Source: Rhodosorus marinus CCMP1338
Taxonomy: Eukaryota; Plantae; Rhodophyta
Direction: 5' to 3'
NCBI GenBank assembly: GCA_029953675.1
Contig: JAMWBK010000011.1
Span: forward strand, 744,001 to 808,000
DNA: 64,000 bases
Shown here: one piece after another, positions 10,333 to 55,494 of the stretch
Layout: every line of letters begins with the position of its first letter
Position numbering within the stretch: the first letter of the stretch is position 1
The notes under the pieces: model-generated
Told to the model about the DNA's origin: nothing
The model's database searches: none
Seen by the model: only the letters and a program-made list of their open reading frames with translations
Program-made: the position numbers and the translations under genes

Positions 10333-11469
10333 ATGGATGCTAGCGTTGACGTTGGGACGATCTTGTCAGATATCGCTACTTGGGAGGACATGGATGAGGG
10401 TCTGGACCTTGGTTTTTTTCAAAGCTTGGAGGCTCTAGGTGCTGCTGCGTTCGATGGGAACACGCGAAACGATGGAAGTAAGTTCCTTCACGGGTGTCCG
10501 GAAGAGAAGGCCGCGTGGTTGCGTTTCGAGGGTAACGGTCTGGGTAGTGACATCAACCCCGACTCCTGCTACCAGAGAGTGGTCGATTTGAAGAGGGATG
10601 TGTCCGTTAACAATGGGATCGCGGATGAGTTTTTTAAGCCGACTCTACTCAACGTTAAGAGACAGCCGGACATGACTATTAAGGGAGACGGCTGGATCCT
10701 TCACGGAGAAACCCCTATGAGGAACACCTGTGAACCGAACAGTGTCGAAACTTTGAGGTTTATTGAATTCTACGACGGCTCCGCCCCCTCTGTTGTTTTT
10801 TCAAAGAGAAGGGGGGCGGAGTTTGTTCTCATGAAGATGAGGATCGCAGACGATCACCACGCCGTGGTTCACACTGGAGTGATGAAGGCTGGATCGAACA
10901 CGGTGGATCAAGTTGCTGAGATGAAATTGAGGAGGGAGAGGTGCCCAACGATTCCTGGACTCACCTACGAGAATTGTCGATCATTCCATGGGGAAGAAAG
11001 CGAGCCTGCGGTTTGGTTCACTCTGCTGAAGATCGGAGGGCTCACCGGAACTTGGATTGTCGAGGACGAACTCAGGACGGGGTCCATCACGTGGGGACAG
11101 GATTCGGATAGACTGACGAGAGTGCACAGCTTCGAGTTTATCCAGAGGTGCTTAGGAATGGCTGGAATCAAGCCCAGGGTTCTGGAGTCACAATTTGCGG
11201 CTGCACCTCAGGGTTACTCTGCGGCCTCGGTGAGCAACGTGAGCGAGGAGTTCCCTTCCTCCGGTAGAGATATCAACGGGAAACAGTGCCCGCAGTGCCG
11301 CAAATGCTTTTCGGTGAAGTCGAAGGTGGTGCGACATATCAACACCGTCCACAAGAACATCAGACTTCACAAGTGTCATATGTGCGACAAGAGGTTCAAG
11401 GAGAAGGGACATCTGCAGAAGCACTTGAGATCCCACGTGAGGAAACAGCTCGTGAATGGACATATTTGA
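10333..11469 (+). CDS. Divergent N-domain plus 2-finger C2H2 protein (378 aa)
   Basis: ATG ORF with two C-terminal fingers (VKSKVVR, EKGHLQK = fingers 3-4). Distant matches to the family N-domain: GDGWILHGETP ~ GSGWAFxGGLP, LRFIEF ~ FRFMTF, LTGTWIV ~ LSGTWT, GIKPR ~ GVHPPR. Confidence 0.9.
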   Translation: MDASVDVGTILSDIATWEDMDEGLDLGFFQSLEALGAAAFDGNTRNDGSKFLHGCPEEKAAWLRFEGNGLGSDINPDSCYQRVVDLKRDVSVNNGIADEFFKPTLLNVKRQPDMTIKGDGWILHGETPMRNTCEPNSVETLRFIEFYDGSAPSVVFSKRRGAEFVLMKMRIADDHHAVVHTGVMKAGSNTVDQVAEMKLRRERCPTIPGLTYENCRSFHGEESEPAVWFTLLKIGGLTGTWIVEDELRTGSITWGQDSDRLTRVHSFEFIQRCLGMAGIKPRVLESQFAAAPQGYSAASVSNVSEEFPSSGRDINGKQCPQCRKCFSVKSKVVRHINTVHKNIRLHKCHMCDKRFKEKGHLQKHLRSHVRKQLVNGHI

Positions 11470-14214: not shown

Positions 14215-14219
14215 AAACA

Positions 14220-15480: not shown

Positions 15481-15488
15481 GCGTTGAG

Positions 15489-15524
15489 TTTAGCACTGCC
15501 AACGTGTTGGCTGGCAGTGCTAAA
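15489..15524. other. Perfect 13-bp inverted repeat with a 10-nt spacer
   Basis: TTTAGCACTGCCA-ACGTGTTGGC-TGGCAGTGCTAAA. Confidence 0.95.
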
Positions 15525-18725: not shown

Positions 18726-20102
18726 ATGGACTTGGTGGGACAGCATGTATCTATTTTGTCACCCCTCCTGGAGTGGGATTCGACGCAACTCAGCTGGCTT
18801 TTGTTTCATTCGCAGAAACAGAGCTTGCCTAGCCCCGGAGACTGTTCCGTCGTGCTGCTAGACATGAAATGGAGCATACCAGAGGCAACACGCGTGGCAC
18901 TTGATGCTTCCGAGGTCGGTCAGTTGATATCAATCTTCTCCGAGCCATCTTTGATGATGACGGAGTTGAGGGAGGAGACCTTTTCTCTGGGATCGTGTTG
19001 GGCATTTAGAGGTGGCCTTCCTGAGCACAAGGGTAGGGTGAATCGAGATTTTCAGGGATTTGAGCGTGTGAGATTCTTGAGCTACAGTGAAGACTCGAGA
19101 GCTGTTTCTATCTTATCAGCGGAGGTCGGTCCTGGGCTGTTGGCGTTTTCCAAGGTTGTAGAGGAGGATGGGAGGCACACTTCTTCGCTTATGGGACTCC
19201 TTGATACTGCCACGGAGACTATCACGCACTGTGCAGCCGCACAAAATCGTCATAGCTGCGATACATGCCGAGTTCAAAACGTTCCGTGCGATCCTCTGAA
19301 GTGCCATAACGAGCAGGACTTTGAGCTAGCACTCGATTACAGGAGGCAGATTCTGGAGCAATCAGAAAGCCCGAGAAGCATCTCGATGCAGTATATTATT
19401 CTTTGGCTTTCTGGTACATGGACCTGTCCCATGGAGCCCTTAGAGCCCATGACGTACAGCGCAACATGTCACCTCAACGGTTCAACCTTCGACAGCGCGT
19501 TGCTGTCGGTGCTTCAAGATGAAATATCCGGTTCCCACCCTCCGCGGGCCTCGTTCCGCATTGTCAGCGAAGGACGGAAGGAAATGGATCACTTTCTGGG
19601 TTTAGAACTGGATGAATTTGAATTCAGTTCCAGCGAGGAATGGTCACCAACTCTTACTCCCACCGCAGATTTCCTTTCACAACCGAGCGGAAAGGACCAC
19701 GGCGTTAAGAAAACAGAAAGGATCTGCCAGATCTGCAACGCAAGCTTCAGAAGGAGCTATGACCTCAAAAGACATACGGCGGCTATTCACGAGAAACGAA
19801 GGGATTTTATCTGCCCAAAGTGCCCCAAGACCTACACTCAAAAGGGCCACCTCAACGAGCATATCCGGATGGTCCACTGTGAGGAACCCGGACTTCAATG
19901 CCCAGTGTGTAAAAAGCAATTTGGGATCAAATCCAAGCTGGAACGCCACATCTCAACCGTACATGAGAACATGAGAAGCTTTAAGTGCTTGGAATGCTCA
20001 AAATCATACAAGGAAAGGTCGTACCTGAAGCAACATCTTCTTACCCAGCACAACATTCGAATGGAGGGGCCCACGAGCCCGAGACCGAAGGACTCACCCT
20101 GA
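18726..20102 (+). CDS. N-domain + Cys4 + 4xC2H2 zinc-finger protein (family member 1)
   Basis: 458-aa ATG ORF with LEWDS, GGLPE, CDTC-x6-C-x4-C, HPPRASFR and four C-x2-C...H-x4-H fingers. Confidence 0.95.
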   Translation: MDLVGQHVSILSPLLEWDSTQLSWLLFHSQKQSLPSPGDCSVVLLDMKWSIPEATRVALDASEVGQLISIFSEPSLMMTELREETFSLGSCWAFRGGLPEHKGRVNRDFQGFERVRFLSYSEDSRAVSILSAEVGPGLLAFSKVVEEDGRHTSSLMGLLDTATETITHCAAAQNRHSCDTCRVQNVPCDPLKCHNEQDFELALDYRRQILEQSESPRSISMQYIILWLSGTWTCPMEPLEPMTYSATCHLNGSTFDSALLSVLQDEISGSHPPRASFRIVSEGRKEMDHFLGLELDEFEFSSSEEWSPTLTPTADFLSQPSGKDHGVKKTERICQICNASFRRSYDLKRHTAAIHEKRRDFICPKCPKTYTQKGHLNEHIRMVHCEEPGLQCPVCKKQFGIKSKLERHISTVHENMRSFKCLECSKSYKERSYLKQHLLTQHNIRMEGPTSPRPKDSP

Positions 20103-21241: not shown

Positions 21242-22564
21242 ATGGAATATAGTGGTCGGCATGTATCGATCCTGTCCCATCATTTGGAATGGGATTCGCT
21301 GCCCTTCAACTGGCTGCTGTTCAGGTTTCAGCGCCAGAGCGTCCCTGTGGGTGGCGACTGGTCGCTGCTCTTCTGGCGGCTGAAGTATGACCATCCTGCG
21401 GGGATACGGAAGGCGATGCAGGCGTCTGAGTTCAGTCGGATGGTGTCGGTGTTTTCGCAGCCGTCGCTGATGATGATCGAGCACAGGGACAGGGACTTTG
21501 CGCTCGGTTCGTACTGGGGTTTCGTTGGGGGACTACCCGAGATGAACGGCCTTGCAAATACTGATTTTGGTGGGTTTAAGAGGGTTCGTTTCTTAACATA
21601 CTGTGAAGACTCTCGAGCTGTTATTATCTACATGACTGAAGTGGCACCTGGGGTTATTGCTTTCTCGAAGATCATCGAAGCTGATGCCCGGCATGTTTCC
21701 AACGTGACTGGACTGATCGATGCAGACAGTGAGGCGATTACAATGTGCGTTACGGGGTGGAAGAGAAGGAGCTGTGACCAGTGCGCTCTCGCGAGTATCC
21801 CCTGTGATCCTGCCGTTTGCAACAACGAGAAGGACTTTGATGCAGACCGCGCTGAAAGAAAGGCATTGCTCCTAAGATCAGGTGGCTTGACGTTGGAGTA
21901 TCACAGGATGTGGTGGAATGGAAGTTGGACTGCTCCAACAGGACCTATGGGTCCGATGACAGCGTTCGCATCTTGCACTTTGAAGGGGCCGGGGTTCGAC
22001 GTGGCTTTGCTTTCCGTAATGCAACATGAAGTATCGAACGTTCATCCTCCTCGCTCCTCATACCGTATTGTAAATGAGGGAATCAACGCGATGAACTACT
22101 TCCTATCGCTGGAGGACACAGAGGTTGAAGCGAGCGAAAAACTAGCTTCAAGCATCGACCTTTTGGAGGACCCTATTTCCTTGGATTGGCTATCACTTCT
22201 GGACGATAAGACCTGTGAGATTTGCGGGTCAACGTTCACGAGGGTAATCGATGTGAGAAGACATAAGGAGAATATGCATGGGAAGAAGAGAAAGTATGAG
22301 TGCTGGATTTGTCCAAAGTCGTACTCCCAGAACGGTCACCTTCGCGAGCACGTCCGACAGGCACATGTTGCTCAGGACGCGTTCTCGTGTACACTATGTA
22401 GTAAGAGATTCGGAGTCAAACACAAGCTGCAAAGGCACTTCACTACAGTTCATGAAAACAGGCGGCGCTTCGAGTGCGAAGTATGCTCGAAGAAATACAA
22501 GGAGAAGTCGTCGCTTAAACATCACCAGCTGGTCCACCACGTTCATCTATTCGAGGAATCATGA
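21242..22564 (+). CDS. N-domain + Cys4 + 4xC2H2 zinc-finger protein (member 2)
   Basis: ATG at 21242 (MEYSGRHVS) aligns with paralog starts. All family motifs and four fingers are present. Confidence 0.95.
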   Translation: MEYSGRHVSILSHHLEWDSLPFNWLLFRFQRQSVPVGGDWSLLFWRLKYDHPAGIRKAMQASEFSRMVSVFSQPSLMMIEHRDRDFALGSYWGFVGGLPEMNGLANTDFGGFKRVRFLTYCEDSRAVIIYMTEVAPGVIAFSKIIEADARHVSNVTGLIDADSEAITMCVTGWKRRSCDQCALASIPCDPAVCNNEKDFDADRAERKALLLRSGGLTLEYHRMWWNGSWTAPTGPMGPMTAFASCTLKGPGFDVALLSVMQHEVSNVHPPRSSYRIVNEGINAMNYFLSLEDTEVEASEKLASSIDLLEDPISLDWLSLLDDKTCEICGSTFTRVIDVRRHKENMHGKKRKYECWICPKSYSQNGHLREHVRQAHVAQDAFSCTLCSKRFGVKHKLQRHFTTVHENRRRFECEVCSKKYKEKSSLKHHQLVHHVHLFEES

Positions 22565-24166
22565 GGAGCTCGCATTGGATCAGGACGCAGTCCTGAGCAT
22601 ACACGAAAATCCTGCGGCAATGACAAAAAACTTTCCGCTATAAGAGCTCGACTTCCTTGGCCAAAAGGGCGGAGCCCGGGAATTCGGCCTCAAACAGTCA
22701 CGTTTCGCAGTAGTGATGCGGCACGTGTCTGTTTTCTTTTGAAATCCACATCAACTAAGAGTACGTAACGAGAGCAACTAGCCAAAGGCAAGAGAGCTGG
22801 CCAAGTGAACTGCAAAGTGCGTTTGCACAGCACGGCTGGGACTTGCTTGGCTGAGACTTGTGCGCAACGTCGAGGGCCATTACCAGGCCCCCGAGTACGA
22901 CGCAATACGCTAGCGCAGTACAGTCAGTTCGTTGAGAGTGAGGTCGGAGTGCGTATCGCCCTTTTCGATGACGTCTTCTCTGGGGTTACCAGACTGCAGG
23001 AAAAGACGACTATGTTGTTACAAACTGTTTTCCTACGAGGCGGGACGGTATGGGATAACGAAGAAGGACTTAATTCGCAGTAACAGCTGCTCAAGCTATG
23101 TTTTGGTCAGGGAAAACCGTGCGCCAGCTGTCCTCGTTGAGCCAGTTTTTCAGCTTGCTTGCCAGCGCCACTGTTTCTTTTGAAAACTCGTCCTGGGTAA
23201 CCACGTCTATCCAAATGACATGTTATCAACTTAAGGCTGTCAAGGATGACGAATTCATTTGTAAAAGTAGATCATTGAACAGCTCCGGCACTCCTCAGCC
23301 GCGGCACTATAGACGAGCCCCATCCAGCCGATAAATGCTCATTCCAGCCGTACGCGGGCAGATCTTTTCGTCCGATACCTCGACCTCGATGTATCGGTAC
23401 AGCGAACTAGATCCGTTTTCAAGCAGTGGCCAGAACTAGCACTTCAACATAAGGGCTTTCAGTGAAATCACTTGCGTCGACCCTCAAACCGGGCAAGCCC
23501 AACTCCAACTCGCGTCAACCCTCACAAAGGAGAATACAAAACATTTTAAACCATAATTCAAGAATTAGAACTCCTCCTAACGGCCCAAATTATATGACAG
23601 ACCAATAAACGCTGTTTTTACAATCAAAAATCCGTCTTTCTGCGGAGTGGCGAATTACTGGTCGGTGAGAGCCCAGTTAGCCAGGTTTCTTTTCTTTGCC
23701 AGCTTTACGGGACGGGAAAATCTGAACGAGCACTTGGTGGAGCTGCTTCATCGTTGTGTGAAGCTGACTTTCAAGTTCAGGTCCCTTCTTACTTCTACAT
23801 AAAGACGCTTCAGCTCTTCAGTTTTTTTTAATCTGTTACGTGTTTCTAAAGCGCTTCTCCTCTCGGCTTCAGGAGGGACTGCTGTTGATGCAATGGACTT
23901 GCGGAGCGGGAAAGCTTTTTTTTGCCATTCCTGACGTCGTTTTCGGAGCGGAGGACCTTCAACTTGACTGCGTTGCTTCTCCCTTAGCTATATATGTCCG
24001 CGAAGAACACCCACATGGCATCAATGTGCCGTTATTTCATCCAAACCCCCCTTTTGGAAGGACCGTTGAGTACACTAATAGCGAGATGTGTACACCAGGA
24101 GACTCGGTACAGCTTACAGCCGCGTCGGCAGACGAGCGTTTGCGGCTTGCTCAGGGTGTTGCGGGG

Positions 24167-25501
24167 ATGGACATCATCGGAGAGAATGTATTAAGCTTAT
24201 CACCTTTTCTACAATGGGATTCTACTCCATTCAACTGGCTTCTGTTCCGCTTGCAGAAGCAGACTGTCCCCGTTCCGGGTGAAGGCTCGGTTCTGCTATG
24301 GGACTCGAAGTGGTATGTACCGGAGGCGGCGAAGGTGGCCATGGAGGAGTCGCAGATTGGTCATCTGATCTCGAGGTTTGGTGAACCCTCGCTGATGATG
24401 CTAGAGCTTCGGCAGGAGGACTTCCTGCTGGGCTCCTACTGGTCATTTATTGGCGGTTTGCCTGAGGTGAACGGGCGAGCGAACGGCAACTTTGCAGGGT
24501 ATAACAGGGTCAGGTTTTTGACATACATGGCAGACCCTGGAATGGTTGTGGTATTCACTACTGAAGTGACACCCGGCGTTATTGCCTTCTCCAAAATCGA
24601 GGAGCTGGATGCTCGGCATGCGGCCCACACAGTTGGACTGATTGATACGACGACAGAGAACGTCATTCTGCGCATTAGGACGACTAGCAGAAGGAGCTGC
24701 GACGAGTGTGCGTCTTTGAATCGAGCATGTGATCCATCGACTTGTCAGAACGATCAGGACTTTGAGATGTCGAGAGCGGTAAGGCAGCTGCTCATTTCGC
24801 AACCTTCAAGCAACTACTCCCAATCGGCTCTAGACTATCAGCAGCTCTTTACAGATGGAGCATGGACGGGACCCCTGGGCAGTCCTGACCCGATGGTAAC
24901 CGTCGCCAGATGCTATTCGAAAGGTGCATTGTTTGATGTGGCTCTGCTTTCCGTAGTTCAAAACGAGATATCTGGAGTCCACCCTCCCCGCTCGTCTTTT
25001 CGTATTGTGAGTGAAGAATGGAATCAAATGGAGTACTATCAGGCCTTGGAGGACGTCTCCCGTAGCCCATTGGAAGAATCTTCACATAGTGAGGTGCGGT
25101 GTGCAAAGCCAAGCCCGCGCTCCTCTGGTACAGCAAAGCAAAGCAGAACATGTGAGATCTGTATGACCACCTTCCGCAGAAACTACGATCTGAAGAGGCA
25201 CTGGGCAGCGGTTCACGAGAACAGGAGGGACTTTGAATGTCTAATATGTGGCAAAACGTATACGCAAAAAGGGCATCTTAGAGAACACATCCGATCCGTG
25301 CACACGGATGATACAGCGTTCCAGTGCCGGATATGTAAAAAGCGATTTGGGGTTCAGTCGAAGCTGGAACGTCATGTCACCACCGTACACGACAGCAACC
25401 GGGGCTTCCAATGTAATCTATGCTCGAGAAGCTACAAGGAAAAATCATCCTTGAGCAAACACTTGCTGAAGCACCACAAGATTCGGAAGGGGAAAGACTG
25501 A
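24167..25501 (+). CDS. N-domain + Cys4 + 4xC2H2 zinc-finger protein (member 3)
   Basis: ATG at 24167 (MDIIGENVLS) aligns with MDLVGQHVS of member 1. The frame is open to 23840 but that extension has no paralog counterpart. Confidence 0.93.
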   Translation: MDIIGENVLSLSPFLQWDSTPFNWLLFRLQKQTVPVPGEGSVLLWDSKWYVPEAAKVAMEESQIGHLISRFGEPSLMMLELRQEDFLLGSYWSFIGGLPEVNGRANGNFAGYNRVRFLTYMADPGMVVVFTTEVTPGVIAFSKIEELDARHAAHTVGLIDTTTENVILRIRTTSRRSCDECASLNRACDPSTCQNDQDFEMSRAVRQLLISQPSSNYSQSALDYQQLFTDGAWTGPLGSPDPMVTVARCYSKGALFDVALLSVVQNEISGVHPPRSSFRIVSEEWNQMEYYQALEDVSRSPLEESSHSEVRCAKPSPRSSGTAKQSRTCEICMTTFRRNYDLKRHWAAVHENRRDFECLICGKTYTQKGHLREHIRSVHTDDTAFQCRICKKRFGVQSKLERHVTTVHDSNRGFQCNLCSRSYKEKSSLSKHLLKHHKIRKGKD

Positions 25502-27126: not shown

Positions 27127-28497
27127 ATGAACGTGGGTGCGGCTTTCTCGTCCGTCTCACGGCACTTGGACTGGGGTTCTGTCGCGGCGGACTGGTTGCT
27201 TTTCAAGACGCATAAATTGGCAGTGCCTCGTCCAGGTGAGTGGCAGACGCTGCTAATGGACACGAGAGTGTATGTGCCGGAAGATATGAGGGCGGTTCTA
27301 GAACAGAGAGAGGTCGCCCGGATGCTTGGAATTCTGCAGCAGCCTGTGCTGATGATGGTCCAACATGTTGAAGATAAGTATACGTTGGGGTCTGGATGGG
27401 CATTCCAGGGAGGTCTGCCGGAGCAAGACGGCGGGGTCAACAAGAGGTTCACGGGAGTCGTAAGGATACGCTTCATGCTGCACTATGAGGAGCAGAAAAC
27501 AGTCAATACTGTATCTTGCGAAGTGCAATCCGGGCTCGTGGCGTTTTTAAAAACTGGCGAAGTTGACGGAAGGTTCAATAGATCGGTTTGGGGAGTCCTC
27601 GACAAGGAGACTGAGAAACTTCTCGCAGTCAGTACGTCTGTTGCTCGAAGGGAATGTGATAAGTGCCGCATGCTTGGCGGTCCATGTGATCCCGAAGCGT
27701 GCGATACAAGTGATCAAGCTTTCGAAAGCCTGTGGGCTAGTAGAATGAAGGTGAAGGAGCGGTCAGTTTTCACACATATAGACATGGAGTACTTATGCCT
27801 TCTGTATGACCGCTCTTCTTGGAGTATTTCCCACGGGCCTGGTAAGCCGATTACTGCCGTCGTGGCAAGCTACAAAAGCGGACCTCTCTTCGAGGTCGCG
27901 CTGGTCTCGGTTGTGCAAGATGAAGTTCTAGGAATACACCCTCCGCGATCCTCGTTTCGAACAGTGAAATATGTGCGGGAAGCCGTTGAGTATGTTCTGG
28001 GTCATGACGAGGGAGAGGAGTCGTTGAACAAGCAAGAAGCGATTCTGGGTATGGAAGAGGATTCGGTAATTGAGAGCGGGTCTCCTGGCGTGAATGCATC
28101 GGCGGATGACAGCGGGTCTTCGAATCGGAACGTAGAGGATGCTAGAGCGGCTTGCGATCAATGTGGTATGAAGTTCAAGAGTAGGTGGGAATTGGAGAGA
28201 CATCGACGAGGGGTGCACCTGAAACGCCGAGACTTCAAGTGCAGTACTTGCGGGAAGAACTTCTCTCAACAAGGACACGTCAACGAACACGTTAGGGTGG
28301 TCCACAGTAGAGCAAATTTGCACCAATGCAAGACCTGTGGGAAGGGTTTTGGTGCCATGTCGAAGCTTCGGCGACACGTCCTCACCGTCCACGAAAAAGA
28401 GCGCAATTTCCACTGCAAAATGTGCAGCCAGTCCTACAAAGAGAGGTCGTACCTAAAACGGCACATGCGGAATCAGCACGGGGAAAAAATGCCCTAA
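27127..28497 (+). CDS. N-domain + Cys4 + 4xC2H2 zinc-finger protein (member 4)
   Basis: 456-aa ATG ORF with LGSGWAFQGGLPE, CDKC-x6-C-x4-C, HPPRSSFRTVKY and four fingers. Confidence 0.95.
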   Translation: MNVGAAFSSVSRHLDWGSVAADWLLFKTHKLAVPRPGEWQTLLMDTRVYVPEDMRAVLEQREVARMLGILQQPVLMMVQHVEDKYTLGSGWAFQGGLPEQDGGVNKRFTGVVRIRFMLHYEEQKTVNTVSCEVQSGLVAFLKTGEVDGRFNRSVWGVLDKETEKLLAVSTSVARRECDKCRMLGGPCDPEACDTSDQAFESLWASRMKVKERSVFTHIDMEYLCLLYDRSSWSISHGPGKPITAVVASYKSGPLFEVALVSVVQDEVLGIHPPRSSFRTVKYVREAVEYVLGHDEGEESLNKQEAILGMEEDSVIESGSPGVNASADDSGSSNRNVEDARAACDQCGMKFKSRWELERHRRGVHLKRRDFKCSTCGKNFSQQGHVNEHVRVVHSRANLHQCKTCGKGFGAMSKLRRHVLTVHEKERNFHCKMCSQSYKERSYLKRHMRNQHGEKMP

Positions 28498-31531: not shown

Positions 31532-32908
31532 ATGGATTGTAAGTGGGCATTGGAATGTATGGTTGGACGGCAAGTGTCTTCCGTTTGCCATCACCTGGAA
31601 GTGGACCCAATTGCTTCAAGCTGGATTATGTGTAAGAGCCATAGGCGGGCTGTGCAGCACCCCGGATACTGTTCTGTCCTGCTCCTGACCGTAAAGGTTG
31701 AACAGGTGGATATTTCTGAGCCATGGATAGAGGGCCATATGTCGAAAGTCTTGAATGTGATGACGCAGCCGCTACTTCTGATGACTGAGGTACAAGATGA
31801 GCGATATTCAATAGGTTCTGGATGGGCATTCAATGGTGGCCTTCCCGAGGTGGATGGGACGGTCAACATGAACTTTGGAGGAGTGGAGAGAATCCGACTA
31901 ATGACGCTGATCGGTGACAATGGCATGGCGGTGGTTGTTTACTCGTGTATCGTAGGACAGGGGCTGGTGGGTATGCTGAAGGTGATAGAGATAGACGAGA
32001 GGAGTGTGCACAGCTCTTATTATCTCGTTAACCAAAAGACAGAAACTATAATAGGTGAGGCGCAAGCGCTTAGTCGCCTTCCATGTACTCCGTGTTCAAC
32101 TAGCGGGCGTACCTGTGATCCCAGCGCGTGCGAAAACAAGGCGTCATACGATATAGAGAGAGCTTGTCGACAAGAGCTTCTCAACAGCATGGATTATCCG
32201 ACTTGCAACATGCAGTACTACGAGAAACTTCTGAGTGGGAGTTGGTCATCATCGCTAGGCTCCTCGGGCACAGCAAGACACAAGAGTACCTGCATTAGAA
32301 CGGGCACGGCGTTTCAGTCTGCACTTACTGCGGTGATGCAGCGCGAGATTGTGGACGTTCATCCCCCGCGCGCGTCCTTCCGCACGGTAAAAACCGGAAA
32401 AGATGAGATGGATTACTTCCTGGGGCTTGAGGAGCAGTCTGTCGCCGCTTTGAGCAAGGAGAGGCCTTTCACCAAGGATTCGATTAACCAGCGTCCCCAC
32501 ATTGGGAAGGTTTGTGTAGAAAGCGCGAGGGAATCAAAACTTATTTGCCCCGAATGTGGCAAGAGGTTCCCAAGAGAATGCGAGGTTAGGAGACACCGTA
32601 CAACTGTCCACGAGAAACGACGAGATTTCATATGTTCAATCTGCGCCAAGGCTTTTGGACAGCTGGGTCATATGAATGAGCATATACGCGTAACGCATAG
32701 TGGATGCAACATGTGCAAGTGTGGGACGTGCGGAAAGAGGTTCGGGAACTCATCCAAGCTCAATCGACATGTACAGACGGTACACGAGAAGGTACGGAGC
32801 TTCGAGTGCGAGCTGTGTGATGGGCGGTACAAGGAGAAATCATACCTGAAACGGCACATACTTAACAAACATGGTGTGGAATGGACTGAAACCTCGATAT
32901 GGAAATAA
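31532..32908 (+). CDS. N-domain + Cys4 + 4xC2H2 zinc-finger protein (member 5)
   Basis: ATG ORF (alternative start 31559) with IGSGWAFNGGLPE, CTPC-x6-C-x4-C, HPPRASFR and four fingers. Confidence 0.95.
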   Translation: MDCKWALECMVGRQVSSVCHHLEVDPIASSWIMCKSHRRAVQHPGYCSVLLLTVKVEQVDISEPWIEGHMSKVLNVMTQPLLLMTEVQDERYSIGSGWAFNGGLPEVDGTVNMNFGGVERIRLMTLIGDNGMAVVVYSCIVGQGLVGMLKVIEIDERSVHSSYYLVNQKTETIIGEAQALSRLPCTPCSTSGRTCDPSACENKASYDIERACRQELLNSMDYPTCNMQYYEKLLSGSWSSSLGSSGTARHKSTCIRTGTAFQSALTAVMQREIVDVHPPRASFRTVKTGKDEMDYFLGLEEQSVAALSKERPFTKDSINQRPHIGKVCVESARESKLICPECGKRFPRECEVRRHRTTVHEKRRDFICSICAKAFGQLGHMNEHIRVTHSGCNMCKCGTCGKRFGNSSKLNRHVQTVHEKVRSFECELCDGRYKEKSYLKRHILNKHGVEWTETSIWK

Positions 32909-34900: not shown

Positions 34901-36229
34901 ATGCAGGTTCCATTTTCGAGTCTGAGCGAGCACTTGGAATGGGACTCGATTCCTATGACCTGGTTGCTCTTTAAGAAGCACAAGTTGGCCGTCCCTCAGC
35001 GCGGTGAGTGGCGAATGCTGCTCATGGATATGAGAATGAAAGTTCCTGAGGTAACTGGAGCGGTTCTTGCCTCGTCGGAGGTCATTAAAATGCTGTCAGC
35101 GCTGCAGCAGCCGGCCATGTTGATAACAGATTACGTTGCGGAGAATTTTGTTCTGGGTTCCGGGTGGGCGTTCATGGGAGGTCTTCCAGAACTCGAGGGC
35201 TCGGCGAACGAGAGATTTGCTGGGCTGCAGCGGTTCAGGTTCATGACTTTCCTCGATTCTGGGAGGGTGACAAATATCTCGTGCATAGAAGTTCGTCCCG
35301 GGCTCATAGCGTTCGTGAGAGTAGAGGAGCTGAGTGGACGCTTGAACAGGACTTTCTGGGGCATCGTGGACAAGGAGGCGGAGATGGTCGAAGATTCGGG
35401 TATGTCAATTGATCACAGGGGCTGCGACATGTGCTATTCTTCGAAAGGAAAATGTGAAGCCAGATTGTGCGAGGACGAGCAGTACTTTGCTGACCTGTGG
35501 AACTCTAGGATGGTGCTGAAGCTCGGACTACAGCCGAGGTGGAAGACGTTGGAGTTCTTTACACACTGGTTTAGCGGCACCTGGACTATCCCAGTGGCAG
35601 ATTTAGAGCCAGTTAAGGTGTTGACGACTTGCTACAGAGCGGGAGCAGAATTCGAAAGTGCTTTGCTTGCCGTCGTGCAGGACGAAGTTCTTGGAGTGCA
35701 CCCGCCGCGGTCGTCGTTTAGGACGGTGAAATACGTGAGGGAAGCTGTGAAGTATTTTGTTGACCTCGAGGAGGGAGATCCACCTTTGCTGGGAGCGGAT
35801 TTACTGTCAGATTTCGACTCGGAAGGAGCTCAGAGTTTGTCTGGTCAGGAGGTGCTGAGTCCTGCACTGCCGAAGAATGTGTGCGGGATCTGCGGCGCAA
35901 AGTTCAAGAGAAACTACGAAGCAAAGAGACACCGGGAGACCGTTCACGAGAAACTCAGGGAAAACAAATGCTCCTTTTGCGGGAGGACTTTCTCGCAGAA
36001 GGGACATCTGAACGAGCACATCAGAGTAACACACAGGGAGAACAATGTGCATTCATGTCACGTCTGCGGAAAGAAGTTCGGTGTGAAGTCAAAGATGACC
36101 CGGCACGTTGCGACTGTGCATGAGAATCGGCGCACTTTCAAATGCGAGATGTGCAACCAGTGGTACAAGGAGAAGGCGTACCTTAAGCGGCATATGCTAA
36201 GCCAACACGGAGCCGCACTGGTGTCATAA
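34901..36229 (+). CDS. N-domain + Cys4 + 4xC2H2 zinc-finger protein (member 6)
   Basis: 442-aa ATG ORF with all family motifs and four fingers. Confidence 0.95.
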   Translation: MQVPFSSLSEHLEWDSIPMTWLLFKKHKLAVPQRGEWRMLLMDMRMKVPEVTGAVLASSEVIKMLSALQQPAMLITDYVAENFVLGSGWAFMGGLPELEGSANERFAGLQRFRFMTFLDSGRVTNISCIEVRPGLIAFVRVEELSGRLNRTFWGIVDKEAEMVEDSGMSIDHRGCDMCYSSKGKCEARLCEDEQYFADLWNSRMVLKLGLQPRWKTLEFFTHWFSGTWTIPVADLEPVKVLTTCYRAGAEFESALLAVVQDEVLGVHPPRSSFRTVKYVREAVKYFVDLEEGDPPLLGADLLSDFDSEGAQSLSGQEVLSPALPKNVCGICGAKFKRNYEAKRHRETVHEKLRENKCSFCGRTFSQKGHLNEHIRVTHRENNVHSCHVCGKKFGVKSKMTRHVATVHENRRTFKCEMCNQWYKEKAYLKRHMLSQHGAALVS

Positions 36230-37860: not shown

Positions 37861-39240
37861 ATGGAGACTCCTTACTCGAGTCAAAGTGAGCACTTGGTAT
37901 GGGATTCCATGCCGATGAATTGGTCCTTGTTTAAGACGTACAAACTGGCGGCCCCGCAGCCATCGGACTGGGGAATGCTGCTGCTGGACATGCAAATTAG
38001 AGTCCCTGAGGCTACCGGGGCGGTTCTTGCATCTTCAGAGATCATGCAGATGGTAGGAGTTCTGCAGCAGCCGGCGCTGATGATGACAGAGTACATTTGC
38101 GACAGCTATGCGTTAGGTTCTGGATGGGCTTTCCTCGGGGGTTTGCCGGAGCTGAACGGCGTAGAGAACACGAGCTTTATGGGACTGCAGAGGTTCAGGT
38201 TTATGAGCTTTGTTGAGGGAGGGAAGATGGCGACGCTTTCGTCCGCGGAGGTTGGACCTGGCACCGTTGCCTTCGTGAAGGCGAAGGAGGTGGACGCGCG
38301 ACACAATGCAACTTGGTGGGGCATTGTGGACAAGGAGAAGGAGACTATCCTGGAGTACAGCACCTCCGTTACGCGGCGAGCTTGTGAAGAGTGCCGGGTG
38401 ATGGTGAAGACGTGTGACCCACGAACCTGTGCCAGCGACGTTTCCTCAGAAGACCTTTGGCACTGGAGTAAAAGAAAAGAGCTGAAGGATCATACCGGCC
38501 TCAGGAAGCTAACGTTGGAGTATACGCAGTATTGGCATCGTGATTCTTGGGCGATTTATGTTGGTCCTCTCGAGCCGTTGACAATTTCGCTTTCTCAGTA
38601 CTCGAGTGGTCCTGTCTTCCAGATTGCGCATATCGCAGTTGTTCAGGACGAAGTGCTAGGGCTACACCCTCCGCGGTCGTCGTTTCGAACTGTGAAGTAT
38701 GCGCGGGACTTGTTGAACTATCCCGATGGCCTCGAGGTGGGAAAGCCGTCTTCAGCAATAGGAGTCGAGCTTCTTAAGCCGGCGGGAAGCTCAGAAAGTG
38801 GAAGCAGTTCCGCAGATGCCGTCAGCGCTCCAGCCTCGCTGAAGGGCTTATGTGAGATCTGTGGGGCAAAGTTTAAGAGAAAATACGAAGCGAGAAGGCA
38901 CCGGGAGAATGTTCACGAGAAACTGCGGGAGCACCAGTGCGAACTGTGCGAGAGAACGTTCTCCCAGAAAGGTCACTTGAACGAGCATATCCGTGTGATT
39001 CATAGTGAGCAGTCTGTGAATTCGTGCACTATCTGCGGGAAGCGGTTTGGAGTGAAGTCCAAGATGGAGCGGCATGTGGCAACAGTACATGAAAATCGGC
39101 GATCATTTCAGTGTGAGGTGTGCAAGAAGTGGTACAAAGAGAAAGGATACCTGAAGCGGCATTTGCGTGTGGCGCACGAATTGGAATTGTCCTCGGAGAA
39201 GCTTAGAATAGGAGATTCTTCCGAAGACATGTCCGCATAG
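37861..39240 (+). CDS. N-domain + Cys4 + 4xC2H2 zinc-finger protein (member 7)
   Basis: ATG at 37861 (METPYSSQSEHL) aligns with member 6 (MQVPFSSLSEHL). All motifs and four fingers present. Confidence 0.95.
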   Translation: METPYSSQSEHLVWDSMPMNWSLFKTYKLAAPQPSDWGMLLLDMQIRVPEATGAVLASSEIMQMVGVLQQPALMMTEYICDSYALGSGWAFLGGLPELNGVENTSFMGLQRFRFMSFVEGGKMATLSSAEVGPGTVAFVKAKEVDARHNATWWGIVDKEKETILEYSTSVTRRACEECRVMVKTCDPRTCASDVSSEDLWHWSKRKELKDHTGLRKLTLEYTQYWHRDSWAIYVGPLEPLTISLSQYSSGPVFQIAHIAVVQDEVLGLHPPRSSFRTVKYARDLLNYPDGLEVGKPSSAIGVELLKPAGSSESGSSSADAVSAPASLKGLCEICGAKFKRKYEARRHRENVHEKLREHQCELCERTFSQKGHLNEHIRVIHSEQSVNSCTICGKRFGVKSKMERHVATVHENRRSFQCEVCKKWYKEKGYLKRHLRVAHELELSSEKLRIGDSSEDMSA

Positions 39241-41556: not shown

Positions 41557-43029
41557 ATGGACTATGTAGGAAGTCCTGCGTCGAGAATATGTCGTTACTT
41601 GGTGTGGAACTCAGTTCCGATGAACTGGATTCTTTTCAATCTGCACAAGCTGTCTGTTCCGGAGTCGGTGGATTGGAAGACCCTGCTGATGGACTCCCGG
41701 GTGGTTGTTCCCGAAGCGACGCTTCAGGTTTTGCAGGAAAATGAAATGAGCAAGATGTTGGCAGCTTTGCAGCAACCGTTCCTGTTAACGACCCAGTTCG
41801 GCAATGAGTCTTACTCGCTTGGCTCTGGATGGGCATTCATGGGTGGACTCCCGGAGGTGGACGGGGAAGTAAACCCTGGGTTCACAGGTTTGAAGAGGAT
41901 CAGGTTCCTAATGTACATGGAGGGTTCTGATGTAATCGAGCTGTTGAGTACTGAGGTAGTCCCTGGAATCGTGGCTTTTGTGAAGTCCACGGATGTGAAC
42001 GAGAGGGTAACCCTGTCGACTTGGGGGATACTGGACAAAGCGACGGAGACAATCATAGGGACGCAGCCTTCTGGCAACCTCAGAGTCTGCGAAATGTGCG
42101 AACTGTTGAACATACCGTGTAGCCCATCGACTTGTAAGAACGAAGAGGTATTCAAGGAGAAATTTGTTAGTCGGAATCAGCTAAAGGCCCGATGGGATTT
42201 CGAGAAACTGACAATGGAGTACGGCTATCAGTGGATGGTAGGAACATGGAAGGTTCCAATGGGAGATCTCGAGCCCATAACACTGAAGCAACAGTGCCAC
42301 AGTCGCGGTGCTTTGTTTGATAAGGCACTGGAGTGCGTGACCCAGGACGAAGTTCTAAGGGTTCTTCCGCCGAGGGCCTCATTTCGAGCTGTTAAGTATG
42401 AGAAGGACGTTGCTAGCTATTTTCTGGACCTGGAGAACGAGTATGGGATGTTAGGCGAAGAGTCATTCGCGGACGGTGGTCTCGAGCTCATCGGTACAAG
42501 CAGCCTTTTTGATGACGCTCTGGATCCTGCAGCGGGATATGAGGGAGCACATATTGTGGGGATTAGCTCGCAGTTTTCGGGGGAAAAAGGATTTCCGAGG
42601 GATGCTGACGAGTTGGCGGAGCGCGTGAGAATTCTAGACCGCAGATCAAGTGGCAGCGAGTCGAAAACTGCTTCGTGCGATATATGTGGGAAGCAGTTCA
42701 TGAGAGATTTTGAAGTTAAGAGACACAAAGTGACGGTTCATCAAAAGCGGCGGGACTTTGCCTGTGCAGAGTGCGGAAGAAACTTTACACAGATTGGACA
42801 CTTGAACGAACATGTAAGAGTTCATCACAGCGGGAAGAACCTGCACGTCTGCAAAGTCTGTGGGAAGAAGTTTGGCGTGAAGTCGAAGTTGAGACGACAC
42901 GAATCAGCGGTCCACGAGAATCGCCGTACTTTCCCATGCAGAATTTGTAACCAATCGTACAAAGACAAGTCGTATCTGAGACAGCACTGGATGAGTCAGC
43001 ATCCAAGGGAAAGGTGGCAAAACACTTGA
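41557..43029 (+). CDS. N-domain + Cys4 + 4xC2H2 zinc-finger protein (member 8)
   Basis: 490-aa ATG ORF with all motifs, a longer acidic linker and four fingers. Confidence 0.95.
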   Translation: MDYVGSPASRICRYLVWNSVPMNWILFNLHKLSVPESVDWKTLLMDSRVVVPEATLQVLQENEMSKMLAALQQPFLLTTQFGNESYSLGSGWAFMGGLPEVDGEVNPGFTGLKRIRFLMYMEGSDVIELLSTEVVPGIVAFVKSTDVNERVTLSTWGILDKATETIIGTQPSGNLRVCEMCELLNIPCSPSTCKNEEVFKEKFVSRNQLKARWDFEKLTMEYGYQWMVGTWKVPMGDLEPITLKQQCHSRGALFDKALECVTQDEVLRVLPPRASFRAVKYEKDVASYFLDLENEYGMLGEESFADGGLELIGTSSLFDDALDPAAGYEGAHIVGISSQFSGEKGFPRDADELAERVRILDRRSSGSESKTASCDICGKQFMRDFEVKRHKVTVHQKRRDFACAECGRNFTQIGHLNEHVRVHHSGKNLHVCKVCGKKFGVKSKLRRHESAVHENRRTFPCRICNQSYKDKSYLRQHWMSQHPRERWQNT

Positions 43030-44707: not shown

Positions 44708-46174
44708 ATGGTGGAAAGTGGGAGTCCGTTTTCTAGTCTATGCGAGTACTTGGAGGACAACCCCGTTGCGACGAGTTGGACTCTGTTTGGGATGAACAAA
44801 CTCGCGATGCCGGATGCTGGAGAATGGCAAACGCTTCTGATTGACAACCGCACTTTCATTCCTGAGGCCACCCGTCAGGTTCTTGAACGCTCGGAAATCT
44901 GCAACTTGATGTACACTCTAAAGGAGCCTTGGCTATTGATGACCCAATTTGGCAATCGGGACTACTCGCTGGGATCTGGATGGGCGTTTATTGGAGGGTT
45001 ACCTGAGAAGGACGGTGTTGTAAATAAAGACTTCAAACGGCTCGAGAGAATCCACTGGCTAAGCTTCAGGGAAGGTTCGAAGATGACCACGCTTCTATTG
45101 AACGAAGTCGAACCAGGAATTCTAGCATTTGCCAAATCTCAGGAGCTGAACGAGAGGCAGAACCGGACAATATGGGGTATAGTGGACCAGAACACGCAGA
45201 GGATCTTGTCGTCGAACGTGTCCGATGATCATAAGACGTGTGATGCATGCCACTTGCTGGGCATCGCCTGTGAACCTCTAACCTGCCCTAACCAAGGTAT
45301 GTTTCTAGCTCAGTGGAATCGGAGAATGGAGATGCATGCCAATTGGGATTTTGAATTGCTAGCTATGGAGTACGGAGAGGGTTGGTTGAACGGGACGTGG
45401 AAGGTTCCAGTGGGGAATCTCGAGCCGGTGACAGTATTCAACTCTTGCCACAGACGTGGGTCGGTTTTTGATTCGGCGCTGCTTTGCGTTCTTCAAGAGG
45501 AAGCGCTCACTGTTCACCCGCCAAGGTCCACATTCCGAGTGGCTAAGTACGAACAGAAAGTTGTTGACAATTTTCTGGGTCTAGAGGGACACAACTTTTG
45601 GAACCGAGAGACCGCGGTACATGGTGGTGAACTCGTCCTGGGCGACAGCAGCTTGGATGACTCTACGCCATCTTCGGCTCAGGACGGCACGGAATCCTGC
45701 CAGTCGTGGATTAGAAGCGAGGGCTTGGCAAACAATGGTGGCGCCGTGGCGAAGGGGAACCACAGAGTTGGAAGCGAGGATGCTGATTCGAAGGCGTCGA
45801 GAAAGTTTCAGTGCGACGTGTGTGGAATGATGTTTAAGAGGAGTTATGAAACTAAGAGGCACCGAGCGACTGTTCACCAGAAACGCCGGGACTACACGTG
45901 CGCTGAATGTGGGAAGAATTTCACTCAGAACGGACATCTGAACGAGCATGTAAAGGTTTATCACATCGGGAAGAACGTGCCCACATGTAAGCTTTGCGGG
46001 AAAAAGTTTGGGAACAAGTCGAAGCTGAACCGACATGTGGCCACGGTTCATGAGAATAGCCGTACCTTCCAGTGCAACGTTTGCAGAGGGATGTACAAGG
46101 AGAAATCCTATCTCAAGCAGCACGTAATAAGCCAACATGGAGTTGAAAGCTGGAAAGAGGCGGTTGGGAGCTAG
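44708..46174 (+). CDS. N-domain + Cys4 + 4xC2H2 zinc-finger protein (member 9)
   Basis: ATG at 44708 (MVESGSPFSSL). All motifs and four fingers present. Confidence 0.95.
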   Translation: MVESGSPFSSLCEYLEDNPVATSWTLFGMNKLAMPDAGEWQTLLIDNRTFIPEATRQVLERSEICNLMYTLKEPWLLMTQFGNRDYSLGSGWAFIGGLPEKDGVVNKDFKRLERIHWLSFREGSKMTTLLLNEVEPGILAFAKSQELNERQNRTIWGIVDQNTQRILSSNVSDDHKTCDACHLLGIACEPLTCPNQGMFLAQWNRRMEMHANWDFELLAMEYGEGWLNGTWKVPVGNLEPVTVFNSCHRRGSVFDSALLCVLQEEALTVHPPRSTFRVAKYEQKVVDNFLGLEGHNFWNRETAVHGGELVLGDSSLDDSTPSSAQDGTESCQSWIRSEGLANNGGAVAKGNHRVGSEDADSKASRKFQCDVCGMMFKRSYETKRHRATVHQKRRDYTCAECGKNFTQNGHLNEHVKVYHIGKNVPTCKLCGKKFGNKSKLNRHVATVHENSRTFQCNVCRGMYKEKSYLKQHVISQHGVESWKEAVGS

Positions 46175-47528: not shown

Positions 47529-48863
47529 ATGGCTGCCATTGGAAGGCACTTTTCGAGTTTGTGCCCTGGTCTGGGGACGGGCTCGATTCCGATAGACTGG
47601 GCGCTTTACAAGATACACAAGTTGGTGGTTCCGGAGCCAGGTCAGTGGCGGATGATGCTTATGGACCTCCGGATGAACGTGCCTGATATCACTCGTGCGG
47701 TCCTGGAATCTTCAGAGTTGCTCAGCGTCCTCTCTGCGCTTCAGCAGCCGGTGCTTCTGATGACTCAGTATGGGAATGAGGATTACGCGCTCGGATCTGG
47801 ATGGGCGTTCGTACGGGGACTACCTGAGGTAAACGGATCACCGAACAGGAAGTTTGCAGGCCTCCAGAGAATCCGATTCACCAGCTACGTCAAGGATTCC
47901 AAGTTGACGACGATTCTCGCAATCCATATTTCGTCGGATATTGTTGCGTTTTCGAAGAGCGAAGAGTTGAATGGAAGGGCAAACCGCACCACTTGGGGCC
48001 TCGTCGACAAACGGACCGAGTTAATTCTGCAACTAAATACCGGGGACGACGACTACAGGCAGTGTGACATGTGCGGACTGGCTGGTACACATTGCGACCC
48101 GAGCACCTGCCTCCACGTTCAAAAATTTGAGGACCTCAGGCTGGAAAGGAACCGGATGAGGGAGAAATCGAGTATGGAAACGATAATAATGGATTATATG
48201 ATGAGCTGGTTGAACGGCGTGTGGAAGATTCCTGTGGGGGATTTCGAGCCGGTGACGCTGATCCACAGGCCGCACCGAAATGGGATGGTGTTCGACACCT
48301 GCGTACTATTTGTCCTGCAGGATGAAATAGTTGGTGTCCACCCGCCGAGGTCTTCGTTCCGAGCAATCCAATCTCAGAGGGCAGCTGCCCATGGGGTTTT
48401 TAGCTCGGAGGAAGGTGGCGCAGGGCCGCCGAGAGGAGAAGCTCCTACTTCGGACGATACGAATTCGGTAGAACAGAGCACTTCGCCAGCAGCAGGTTCC
48501 CCTGTGCCCAGAAATGTTTGTCGGGTATGTGGGATGGTCTTTAAGCGGCATTATGAAACGTCTAGGCATGTGGAAACTGTTCACCGGAAACGAAGGAACT
48601 ATTCGTGCCCGCAATGTGGAAGAAATTTCCTTCAGAATGGACACCTGCACGAGCACATCAGGCTCAGGCACAGCGCGGAGAAGCCGTATCAGTGCAAAAT
48701 TTGCAAAAGGGGTTTTGGTGGCAAGGCAAAGGTGGACCGACACATGGCTACAGTACATGAGAATCGGCGAAATTTCAAGTGCAGCAAGTGCAGCGGGTCG
48801 TACAAGGAGAAGTCGTACTTGAAGCGGCATATGATGAATCAGCACGGGATTGAGTTTACGTAA
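47529..48863 (+). CDS. N-domain + Cys4 + 4xC2H2 zinc-finger protein (member 10)
   Basis: ATG at 47529 (MAAIGRHFSSL). All motifs and four fingers; the only member with a near-canonical linker (HSAEKPY). Confidence 0.95.
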   Translation: MAAIGRHFSSLCPGLGTGSIPIDWALYKIHKLVVPEPGQWRMMLMDLRMNVPDITRAVLESSELLSVLSALQQPVLLMTQYGNEDYALGSGWAFVRGLPEVNGSPNRKFAGLQRIRFTSYVKDSKLTTILAIHISSDIVAFSKSEELNGRANRTTWGLVDKRTELILQLNTGDDDYRQCDMCGLAGTHCDPSTCLHVQKFEDLRLERNRMREKSSMETIIMDYMMSWLNGVWKIPVGDFEPVTLIHRPHRNGMVFDTCVLFVLQDEIVGVHPPRSSFRAIQSQRAAAHGVFSSEEGGAGPPRGEAPTSDDTNSVEQSTSPAAGSPVPRNVCRVCGMVFKRHYETSRHVETVHRKRRNYSCPQCGRNFLQNGHLHEHIRLRHSAEKPYQCKICKRGFGGKAKVDRHMATVHENRRNFKCSKCSGSYKEKSYLKRHMMNQHGIEFT

Positions 48864-51614: not shown

Positions 51615-52991
51615 ATGGATTTGGTTGCAACAGAGAGTTTGGGTCGGTCCGTTTGCACGCTATCGTCTGTGTTTGAGTGGAACTCGATTCCTTTGAATTG
51701 GATGATGTTCAAGAGCGATAAACAGGCTGTTCCACACGCTGGAGACTGGACGATTATGTTGATGGATACGATTTTTAAAATTCCAGAGGCAACTGGTAGG
51801 GCACTGCAAAAGTCTGAGGTGGCTAGGATGATATCTGTGTTGAACCAACCGTCGCTGATGATGACGGAGGTTCACGAAAGGAACTATTCGCTAGGGTCTG
51901 GGTGGGCGTTCGTAGGTGGTTTACCGCAGTTGGGCCTAAGACTGAACTCAAAGTTTCAAGGACTGCAACGCGTTCGGTTTGTTACGTTCTTCGAGAACTA
52001 CAAAGCTGTTGTGGTCTTGTCCAGCGAAGTACGACCTGGGGTGATTGCCTTTATTAGACTCGCCGAGGTGAATGGGAGATACAACTACAGTATATGGGGA
52101 CTAGCAGAAAAAGATAGCGGAACGATAGTGGCGAGTCAGGACCACCTCGATAGACGAAACTGTGATATGTGCAATCTGATGGACATAGCGTGCGATCCTC
52201 GGAGCTGCAAGAACGAACAGTCGTTTGATGACCTGCGAGCGTCGAGAGAAGCAATTTTGGATCGGATGGAGTACCCCATGTACACGATGGAATACACCAA
52301 GGCGTGGCTTCCTGGCAAGTGGACAGTACCTGTGGGACCGTTGGAGCCAGTGACCTTCAGAACGTCAGGGTACATTTCTGGAGCTAGTTTTGAGTTGGCT
52401 TTGCTATCAGTGCGTCAAGATGAGTCAATGAGGGTACATCCTCCGCGAGGTACCTTCAGATTCGTCAAGCTTGGGATGAACGAAATGGACTACTTCCTGA
52501 ACCTGGAGGGGACGTCCACGGCGGAGACGGCTCTGTCAAATGGAACTCCTCAGATATCCTATGAAAAGCAAACTGACGAGGTTAGTGTTTTGGACTCTGT
52601 CGAGGAGGAGACTAAAGAGTTACCTCGGACGAAGGGGAGCACGAAAGTGTGTGAATTATGCGGTATGAGCTTCAGAAGAGTCCATGATCTCAAAAGACAT
52701 GGCGTGGCGATTCACGGGAAGAAGAAGGATTACACGTGCAGATATTGCCAGCAGACTTTTACTCAGAACGGACACCTTAATGAGCACATCCGAGTAACGC
52801 ACAGTGGCAGGAATGTTTTTAAGTGCGATATCTGCCAAAGCGTATTTGGAGCCAGGTCCAAATTGCAGCGTCACATCACAACGGTTCACGAGAATCGTCG
52901 AAATTTCGAGTGCGGAATTTGTCGTGGGAAGTACAAAGAAAAATCGTACTTGAAACAGCACATGCAGGCTGTTCACGGCGAGGAAATGTGA
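51615..52991 (+). CDS. N-domain + Cys4 + 4xC2H2 zinc-finger protein (member 11)
   Basis: ATG at 51615 in AACCATGG context (MDLVATESLG), 458 aa. Recent duplicate of 59418. Confidence 0.95.
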   Translation: MDLVATESLGRSVCTLSSVFEWNSIPLNWMMFKSDKQAVPHAGDWTIMLMDTIFKIPEATGRALQKSEVARMISVLNQPSLMMTEVHERNYSLGSGWAFVGGLPQLGLRLNSKFQGLQRVRFVTFFENYKAVVVLSSEVRPGVIAFIRLAEVNGRYNYSIWGLAEKDSGTIVASQDHLDRRNCDMCNLMDIACDPRSCKNEQSFDDLRASREAILDRMEYPMYTMEYTKAWLPGKWTVPVGPLEPVTFRTSGYISGASFELALLSVRQDESMRVHPPRGTFRFVKLGMNEMDYFLNLEGTSTAETALSNGTPQISYEKQTDEVSVLDSVEEETKELPRTKGSTKVCELCGMSFRRVHDLKRHGVAIHGKKKDYTCRYCQQTFTQNGHLNEHIRVTHSGRNVFKCDICQSVFGARSKLQRHITTVHENRRNFECGICRGKYKEKSYLKQHMQAVHGEEM

Positions 52992-55445: not shown

Positions 55446-55494
55446 TCCAGGTATCTGAAGATTGCGGGTTAGAGTCCCGTCGCGGTTGTCTTGT

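Follow-up and report, generated by a model that had tools for sequence, protein, structure and literature searches.

Transcription factors that combine C2H2 zinc fingers with a lineage-specific accessory domain, and whose genes lie in tandem arrays, are already known. In the animal KRAB-, SCAN-, BTB- and ZAD-C2H2 clusters the accessory domain precedes the finger array, and in the KRAB- or ZAD-finger clusters it is the fingers that diversify. Human THAP4 joins a THAP zinc finger to a haem-binding nitrobindin β-barrel, and the plant HD-ZIP III/IV homeodomain-START factors are an earlier case of a transcription factor with a lipid-sensor domain. To our knowledge, almost nothing is known about how the C2H2 factors of red algae are controlled. 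In most red algae, roughly 20–40% of the predicted transcription factors are of this type (PMC12567131). Here we describe a tandem array of C2H2 zinc-finger genes from the red alga Rhodosorus marinus CCMP1338, contained in a stretch of 64,000 nucleotides (the window; GenBank assembly GCA_029953675.1, contig JAMWBK010000011.1, positions 744,001–808,000, forward strand). Judged from the sequences, what is new in this array is the N-terminal domain (N-domain) of its products and the reversed direction of divergence, in which diversity builds up in the accessory domain and the DNA reader stays fixed.

The window holds 13 full family members, as counted in the initial annotation of this DNA, all on the + strand with uninterrupted open reading frames (ORFs) between positions 18726 and 63557. 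The same build is seen in 13/13 genes: the N-domain, then a linker that is acidic or Ser/Thr-rich, then four C2H2 fingers. In gene 1 (ORF 18726–20102, +; Table 1), positions 18726–19620 encode the first ~298 residues of the protein, and every motif that the annotation had listed was found at its place. Its late W-x-x-G-x-W motif does occur in most members, in the strict form in 8 of the 13 and as G-x-W in 10. Its description of an unassigned β-rich globular domain also holds, with no Pfam or PDB match and ten strands in the AlphaFold models (predicted local distance difference test, pLDDT, 81 and 90). The end that it gave to the domain, at an HPPR motif and an acidic helix, needs correction; both motifs are present, but the core ends near residue 270 and the tail beyond it is specific to the Rhodosorus clade. 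Two features had been overlooked, namely a Cys4 motif in the N-domain and the near-invariance of the finger contact residues.

The N-domain is a previously undescribed, independently folding domain of ~270 residues and constitutes a new protein family. Pfam searches with the full proteins and with 31 diverse N-domains at E ≤ 10 returned zinc fingers only, the N-domain remaining without a match. Single-sequence and profile searches of PDB chains gave only noise (aIF2-alpha E = 0.11, GAL4 E = 8.2, P5AFcnA E = 0.34). No internal duplication was detected when the two halves of the domain were compared by hhalign (probability 0.4%), and the domain is not described in a survey of red-algal transcription factors (PMC12567131). 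The residues conserved family-wide are, in gene 1 numbering, W24, P74, G89, W92, R116, E146, C178, C181, C188, G230, Q264 and P273. The lowest-entropy element among the paralogs is LGSCWAFRGGLP, in which G89 and W92 are near-invariant throughout the family. G230 of the late motif and Q264 are each at least 90% conserved, and GSGW, WxxGxW and Q264 are retained in relatives of just 15–25% identity.

The four canonical fingers, which make up the C-terminal third of the gene 1 protein, are recognised by regular expression in 13/13 genes (C-x2-C-x12-H-x3-5-H), and the finger module is basic, with an isoelectric point (pI) of 9.3–10.2 across the paralogs and 9.7 in gene 1. The contact residues (positions -1, 2, 3 and 6) of the gene 1 fingers are RYDR / QGHE / ISKR / ESYQ; essentially all 13 paralogs carry RY(D/E)R, QGHE, xSKR and ESY(Q/R), and these residues are largely unchanged in relatives whose N-domains are only 15–25% identical. 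The family proteins are presumably sequence-specific transcription factors, and because the canonical recognition positions are near-invariant, the family probably reads one DNA element. Between paralogs the mean identity is 40% in the N-domain versus 52% in the finger region. The most variable elements of the N-domain are strand 8, helix 196–212 and loop 213–220, which are grouped about the Cys4 insert rather than in the strand meander described below. The array resembles the animal C2H2 clusters in its tandem amplification and in the lineage-specific domain that stands N-terminal to the C2H2 fingers. It differs from them in the direction of change, since here the finger contacts are frozen and the N-domain diverges; moreover, the Rhodosorus domain is far larger, shows no sequence relationship to theirs and is followed by only four fingers.

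Comparison of the paralogs shows that the array genes are real and constrained; synonymous sites are saturated, and nonsynonymous divergence (dN), at 0.4–0.6, is well below the synonymous value (dS). Since dN is well below saturated dS and the motifs persist at 15–25% identity, the motifs are shared by descent and not by chance. Six paralogs have one-to-one orthologs with 78–91% identity in another Rhodosorus strain, at least one of which (P0003) has an MMETSP transcriptome as its listed source; the gene 1 protein is 89% identical to the transcript-derived P0001 of another Rhodosorus strain. Ortholog identity amounts to 86% in the N-domain, 90% in the fingers and 75% in the linker. Therefore the N-domain is constrained nearly as strongly as the DNA-binding part, and the linker acts as a disordered spacer.

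The family was found solely in stylonematophycean red algae among named sequences. An exhaustive search of 1.84 billion representative proteins with a hidden Markov model gave 46 proteins at E ≤ 1e-3, a repeat artefact (P0030) included. P0030 was rejected as a family member; it is a tandem-repeat translation of 2038 aa with 32 short matches to profile positions 253–276, in which only an LQ.E....PPRSSF stretch was matched. The database proteins closest to the array are Rhodosorus marinus transcriptome entries, and all named relatives belong to the Stylonematophyceae (Rhodosorus, Bangiopsis and Purpureofilum). Two more distant members are present in GenBank as "hypothetical protein" NDN08_007190 and NDN08_007250 [Rhodosorus marinus], and others in Logan assemblies, including SRR22824282 and SRR22824290. 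Public annotation calls the family proteins hypothetical or "C2H2-type domain-containing" only. Every full-length relative has three to four C2H2 fingers downstream of the N-domain, the finger-less matches being short or truncated. Further word-indexed homolog searches with the family alignments added neither relatives nor names.

The fold of the N-domain was predicted with AlphaFold2 from the 13 paralogs (model 1, pLDDT 81, predicted template-modelling score, pTM, 0.80) and from 31 diverse members (model 2, pLDDT 90.2, pTM 0.84), and the secondary structure is identical in the two models. Both contain ten long antiparallel strands, mostly linked by tight hairpins. An N-terminal wrap with short helices, which includes the conserved W24, is followed by β42–50, α53–61 and α63–71, and then by seven hairpin-joined meander strands at 75–82, 87–95, 111–122, 125–135, 138–146, 151–160 and 165–176. 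After strand 8 comes a 53-residue insert, consisting of the Cys4 segment, α196–212 and α221–228. The chain continues with β230–236, β239–249, the long amphipathic helix α253–270 and a lower-confidence helix at 273–295. The tail with the HPPR motif and acidic helix is a clade appendage outside the core, because conservation fades after residue ~273 and pLDDT falls there (62–84 versus ~90); the tail is kept in the 13 paralogs and missing from distant relatives. On these models the domain would form one large antiparallel sheet of ten meandering strands with strong curvature; a helix-turn-helix would follow strand 1, a long amphipathic helix would stand at the C-terminal end, and Cys4 would stabilise an insert. 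Architectures of this type appear to be those that enclose hydrophobic or amphipathic small molecules in FABPs and Bet v 1/START proteins. A β-rich, barrel-like and possibly ligand-binding domain is compatible with the data, as a lead only.

The Cys4 motif is invariant in 13/13 paralogs. In distant relatives it reads C-x2-C-x6-C-x-C, that is, with the fourth Cys at +2 instead of +5, and C178, C181 and C188 are the sole strictly invariant columns of the 31-sequence alignment (33% mean identity). Its first three Cys share the C-x2-C-x6-C spacing of Gal4-type Zn2Cys6 domains. Unlike these, the Rhodosorus motif has four conserved Cys and not six and is set in an acidic globular domain, and the GAL4 profile matched only at E = 8.2. 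The likeliest role of such a motif in a nuclear protein would be that of a structural zinc site.

Toward the fingers, the linker measures 55–102 aa across the paralogs, with a pI mostly of 4–6 and with hydrophobic-acidic patches, and is the least conserved part between orthologs. Because it is acidic and Ser/Thr-rich and carries such patches, the tail and linker together suggest a possible activation region. The tail by itself is a candidate activation or docking motif.

The best-supported reading is that the array encodes a lineage-specific C2H2 factor family in which the accessory domain provides a paralog-specific input to a common DNA-binding output. The N-domain would be the signal-input module because it is the part that differs between the paralogs. 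The frozen finger contacts speak for this reading, as do paralog N-domains that are only ~40% identical while orthologous ones are 86% identical. As to the kind of input, the predicted architecture makes us lean tentatively, at somewhat less than an even chance, toward small-molecule binding. The N-domain of each paralog would then take up a ligand of its own, or, put less specifically, bind a partner of its own, within it or at its surface. Occupancy would change either the activity of the candidate activation region, namely the acidic tail and linker next to the domain, or the localisation or stability of the protein. In this way different signals could converge on one cis-element. Several points weigh against such a role. 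The domain has no significant structural neighbour, and its ligand-binding architecture is suggested by strand order and weak matches. The variable elements around the Cys4 insert cut both ways, as they would fit an interaction surface or relaxed constraint as well as a pocket. Furthermore, the C2H2 accessory domains known to us (KRAB, SCAN, BTB and ZAD) are protein-interaction modules and not ligand sensors.

The domain had been proposed to be calycin-like, perhaps circularly permuted, with a comparison of predicted structures as the check. Foldseek found nothing below E = 0.05 for either model, in PDB or among the viral structures of BFVD, and the query-normalised template-modelling score (TM) against PDB never exceeded 0.25. 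The weak matches that recurred were up-and-down β-barrels and lipid carriers. Among them were a de novo barrel of 8 strands, 8ah9 (probability about 0.7, TM 0.44–0.49 on a 115-residue target), avidins, nitrophorin 7, a tick lipocalin, NanoLuc, which is FABP-like, the lipid carrier Ups1 and outer-membrane barrels. The idea of a barrel is therefore left with a β-rich domain whose weak matches include up-and-down barrels, none of them significant. A true calycin of the lipocalin, FABP or nitrobindin type would agree with the ten antiparallel strands and the helix-turn-helix between strands 1 and 2, since the element order of FABPs is β-α-α-β9; it would also agree with the up-and-down antiparallel meander, the presence of G-x-W motifs and the best calycin-type matches, all of them weak, namely NanoLuc (E = 0.18–0.85), nitrophorin 7 (E = 0.44) and bradavidin (E = 0.63, TMt 0.44). 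None of the calycin matches falls under E = 0.18, however, the models could not be superposed significantly on the known 8- or 10-strand barrels of PDB, and profile similarity to lipocalin, FABP or nitrobindin is absent in Pfam (0/31 members at E ≤ 10) and in the PDB sequence profiles. By composition alone 0.3–0.7 copies of G-x-W are expected per domain, so the bare motif has no discriminating power. In calycins it sits in the first strand and follows a short N-terminal helix; here the family-conserved copy (G230, W232) lies in strand 9, and an earlier one (PGDW, aa ~38–40, before strand 1) is present in 8 paralogs and is missing from gene 1 and from distant relatives. The domain is also about twice the size of calycins (~270 aa versus 130–180) and adds the Cys4/helical insert of 53 residues that separates strand 8 from strand 9, the N-terminal wrap and the long C-terminal helix. 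Its β-α-α-β9 order can be described without permutation, of which there is no sign. Because G-x-W is late and at chance level and both Pfam and Foldseek are negative, membership in the calycin superfamily and circular permutation are unsupported, and we regard this origin as very improbable. The Bet v 1/START (SRPBCC) proteins are alike in their β-α-α-βn-α order and in the long C-terminal amphipathic helix that is typical of them, and Ups1 was matched weakly (E = 0.12–0.9, TM at most 0.28). Unlike them, the Rhodosorus domain has ten strands in place of 7–9, and none of the 31 members matched START, Bet v 1 or polyketide cyclase in Pfam at E ≤ 10.

A paralog-specific input need not be a small molecule. 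The N-domain may instead be a protein-protein interaction or oligomerisation module analogous to BTB, SCAN or ZAD, which sets paralog pairing or the choice of cofactor. The well-studied N-terminal partners of C2H2 arrays are all interaction modules, ZAD too has a Cys4 zinc site, the most variable elements are helices and loops of surface type that surround the Cys4 insert, and the strongly conserved strand and loop LGSGWAFxGGLPExxGxxN of the tandem paralogs could form a common docking surface. Against this, the domain is three to six times the size of KRAB, SCAN, ZAD or BTB and has a large meander sheet, and no Pfam model of these four matched the full-length proteins or the N-domains. We consider this alternative possible, if on balance doubtful. 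The Cys4 cluster itself could be the functional centre, by way of a bound redox-active metal, an Fe-S cluster or a thiol switch, and the proteins would then be redox- or metal-sensing factors. The four Cys are the most conserved feature of the family, three of them invariant in 31 sequences, and in sensors such as SoxR a compact Cys4 motif holds [2Fe-2S]. But structural zinc knuckles are just as typically spaced C-x2-C-x6-C-x(1 or 4)-C, the shifting position of the fourth Cys speaks for a structural site that tolerates variation, no sequence evidence points to Fe-S, and the divergence of the remaining domain would be left unexplained; such a sensor seems improbable. We likewise regard a second nucleic-acid-binding domain or an enzyme as very improbable, in spite of the Cys4 site, the conserved Arg (R114, R116, R150 and R206) and a large size compatible with catalysis. 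The N-core is acidic in 13/13 paralogs (pI 4.7–6.2, net charge -2 to -17), opposite to the basic fingers, which is why the DNA-binding variant was set aside; beyond R116, E146 and Q264 there is no conserved constellation of catalytic type, and neither Pfam nor Foldseek gave similarity to any enzyme or DNA-binding fold.

For the reading preferred here, a sensor input on a shared DNA-binding output, THAP4 offers a conceptual precedent, in that a zinc-finger module is fused to a β-barrel-type candidate ligand domain. The two differ in finger type and have the opposite domain order and no detectable homology, and THAP4 is not among the Foldseek matches shown; THAP4 is single-copy and widely conserved, whereas the Rhodosorus family is lineage-specific and in tandem. 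Nuclear receptors would share the proposed logic of one-component, ligand-regulated factors whose paralogs differ in the sensor domain, though their all-α ligand-binding domain and C4 fingers are unrelated folds in reversed order. In its boldest form, the hypothesis is that the Stylonematophyceae independently invented "nuclear-receptor-like" one-component factors, with an unseen, Cys4-braced α+β fold that senses small molecules or redox/metal state and with at least 13 paralogs relaying different signals to one DNA element; we hold this unlikely. Should the domain prove to be a sensor, eukaryotes would have in it a new way of coupling signals to transcription, and the array, with one output motif common to its 13 paralogs, would be a compact study system. 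Even if it serves solely for interactions, it would remain a new domain family, possibly with a new fold, and would deserve a Pfam entry and a structure.

Table 1. Features of the Rhodosorus marinus array (positions in the window; residues in gene 1 numbering)
Feature	Position	Strand	Remarks
Gene 1	18726..20102	+	458 aa; N-domain, linker and four C2H2 fingers; from the ORF list
N-domain folded core	18726..19535	+	aa 1–270; AlphaFold2 model m384b846c753e; no Pfam or PDB sequence match
LGSCWAFRGGLP	18987..19022	+	aa 88–99; strand 3 and next loop
ERVRFLSYS	19062–19088	+	aa 113–121, gene 1
LLAFSKVVEE	19137–19166	+	aa 138–147, gene 1
LMGLLD			aa 155–160, gene 1; WGxxD in most paralogs
Cys4 motif CDTCRVQNVPCDPLKC	19257..19304	+	aa 178–193; C178, C181, C188, C193; C-x2-C-x6-C-x4-C
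WLSGTWTCP (late W-x-x-G-x-W)	19404..19430	+	aa 227–235; start of strand 9
C-terminal core helix FDSALLSVLQDE	19482..19535	+	aa 253–270; long, amphipathic
QDEISGSHPPRASFR			aa 264–278, gene 1
Clade-specific tail	19536..19610	+	HPPRxxFR, then acidic-hydrophobic helix EMDHFLGLE (aa 286–294)
Linker	19611..19724	+	Acidic, Ser/Thr-rich, variable
Four C2H2 fingers	19725..20051	+	7-residue linkers; Pfam PF00096 zf-C2H2 E = 4.8e-18, four stretches
Gene 2	21242..22564	+	N-core 21242–22042; ortholog P0015 at 91% identity
Gene 3	24086..25501	+	N-core 24167–24979; likely start ATG at 24086 (MCTPGDS...)
Gene 4	27127..28497	+	N-core 27127–27936; ortholog P0010 at 86% identity
Gene 5	31532..32908	+	N-core 31532–32359
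Gene 6	34901..36229	+	N-core 34901–35698
Gene 7	37861..39240	+	N-core 37861–38664; P0006 starts METPYSS
Gene 8	41557..43029	+	N-core 41557–42363
Gene 9	44708..46174	+	N-core 44708–45514; P0005
Gene 10	47529..48863	+	N-core 47529–48338
Gene 11	51615..52991	+	N-core 51615–52436
Gene 12	59418..60797	+	N-core 59418–60239
Gene 13	62187..63557	+	N-core 62187–62993
Degenerate 14th member	10333..11469	+	Family profile E = 1e-5 over profile positions 68–179; zf-C2H2 with two stretches

The R. marinus genome of 31 Mb contains 24,821 introns in 8392 genes, i.e. about three introns per gene (PMC10250338), and the intronless coding regions of the array are therefore atypical for it. Gene 3 probably starts 27 codons 5′ of the conserved MD.. 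start (24086–24166, +), and its N-terminal extension is also present in the R. marinus transcript protein P0003. In the degenerate 14th member (10333–11469; 25% identity in the family alignment) only the middle of the N-domain can still be recognised, the Cys4 motif is lost and just two fingers are left. A 7-kb gene-free interval separates it from gene 1; within this interval, nt 14000–15500 are A+C-rich (AT skew +0.24, GC skew -0.18) and without long ORFs. The 800 nt upstream of the 13 genes yielded no convincing common motif in a search for shared promoter k-mers, and an Rfam scan of the window gave no match.

Tandem repeats occupy intergenic positions 33717–34226, 46808–47172, 50426–51000, 55238–55703 and 63569–63945, with periods of about 209, 160, 194, 258 and 78 nt, and are mutually unrelated. 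The gap between genes 11 and 12 (52992–59417) measures 6.4 kb, about twice the usual spacing, with a local reversal of GC skew around 54–56 kb. No ORF with a Pfam match was found within it; an intron-rich gene or decayed copies might lie there. The two genes flanking the gap (51600–53021 versus 59404–60826) are 97–100% identical in nucleotide sequence over the N-domain and linker and 81–86% over the finger region, with dS of 0.08 and 0.72, respectively, and without likeness upstream of the start codons. This pattern suggests either a gene-conversion tract or a mosaic duplication.

Near the left end of the window, three short ORFs of 114–185 aa on the + strand (27–371, 3016–3501 and 5078–5635; spacing 3.1 and 2.1 kb) each encode three C2H2 fingers without an N-domain. 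Their fingers are closely like fingers 2–4 of the family (TQSGH.NEH, G.KSKL.RH and KEKY.L.RH), and the ORFs may represent a finger-only sister family or the 3′ exons of unrecognised genes.

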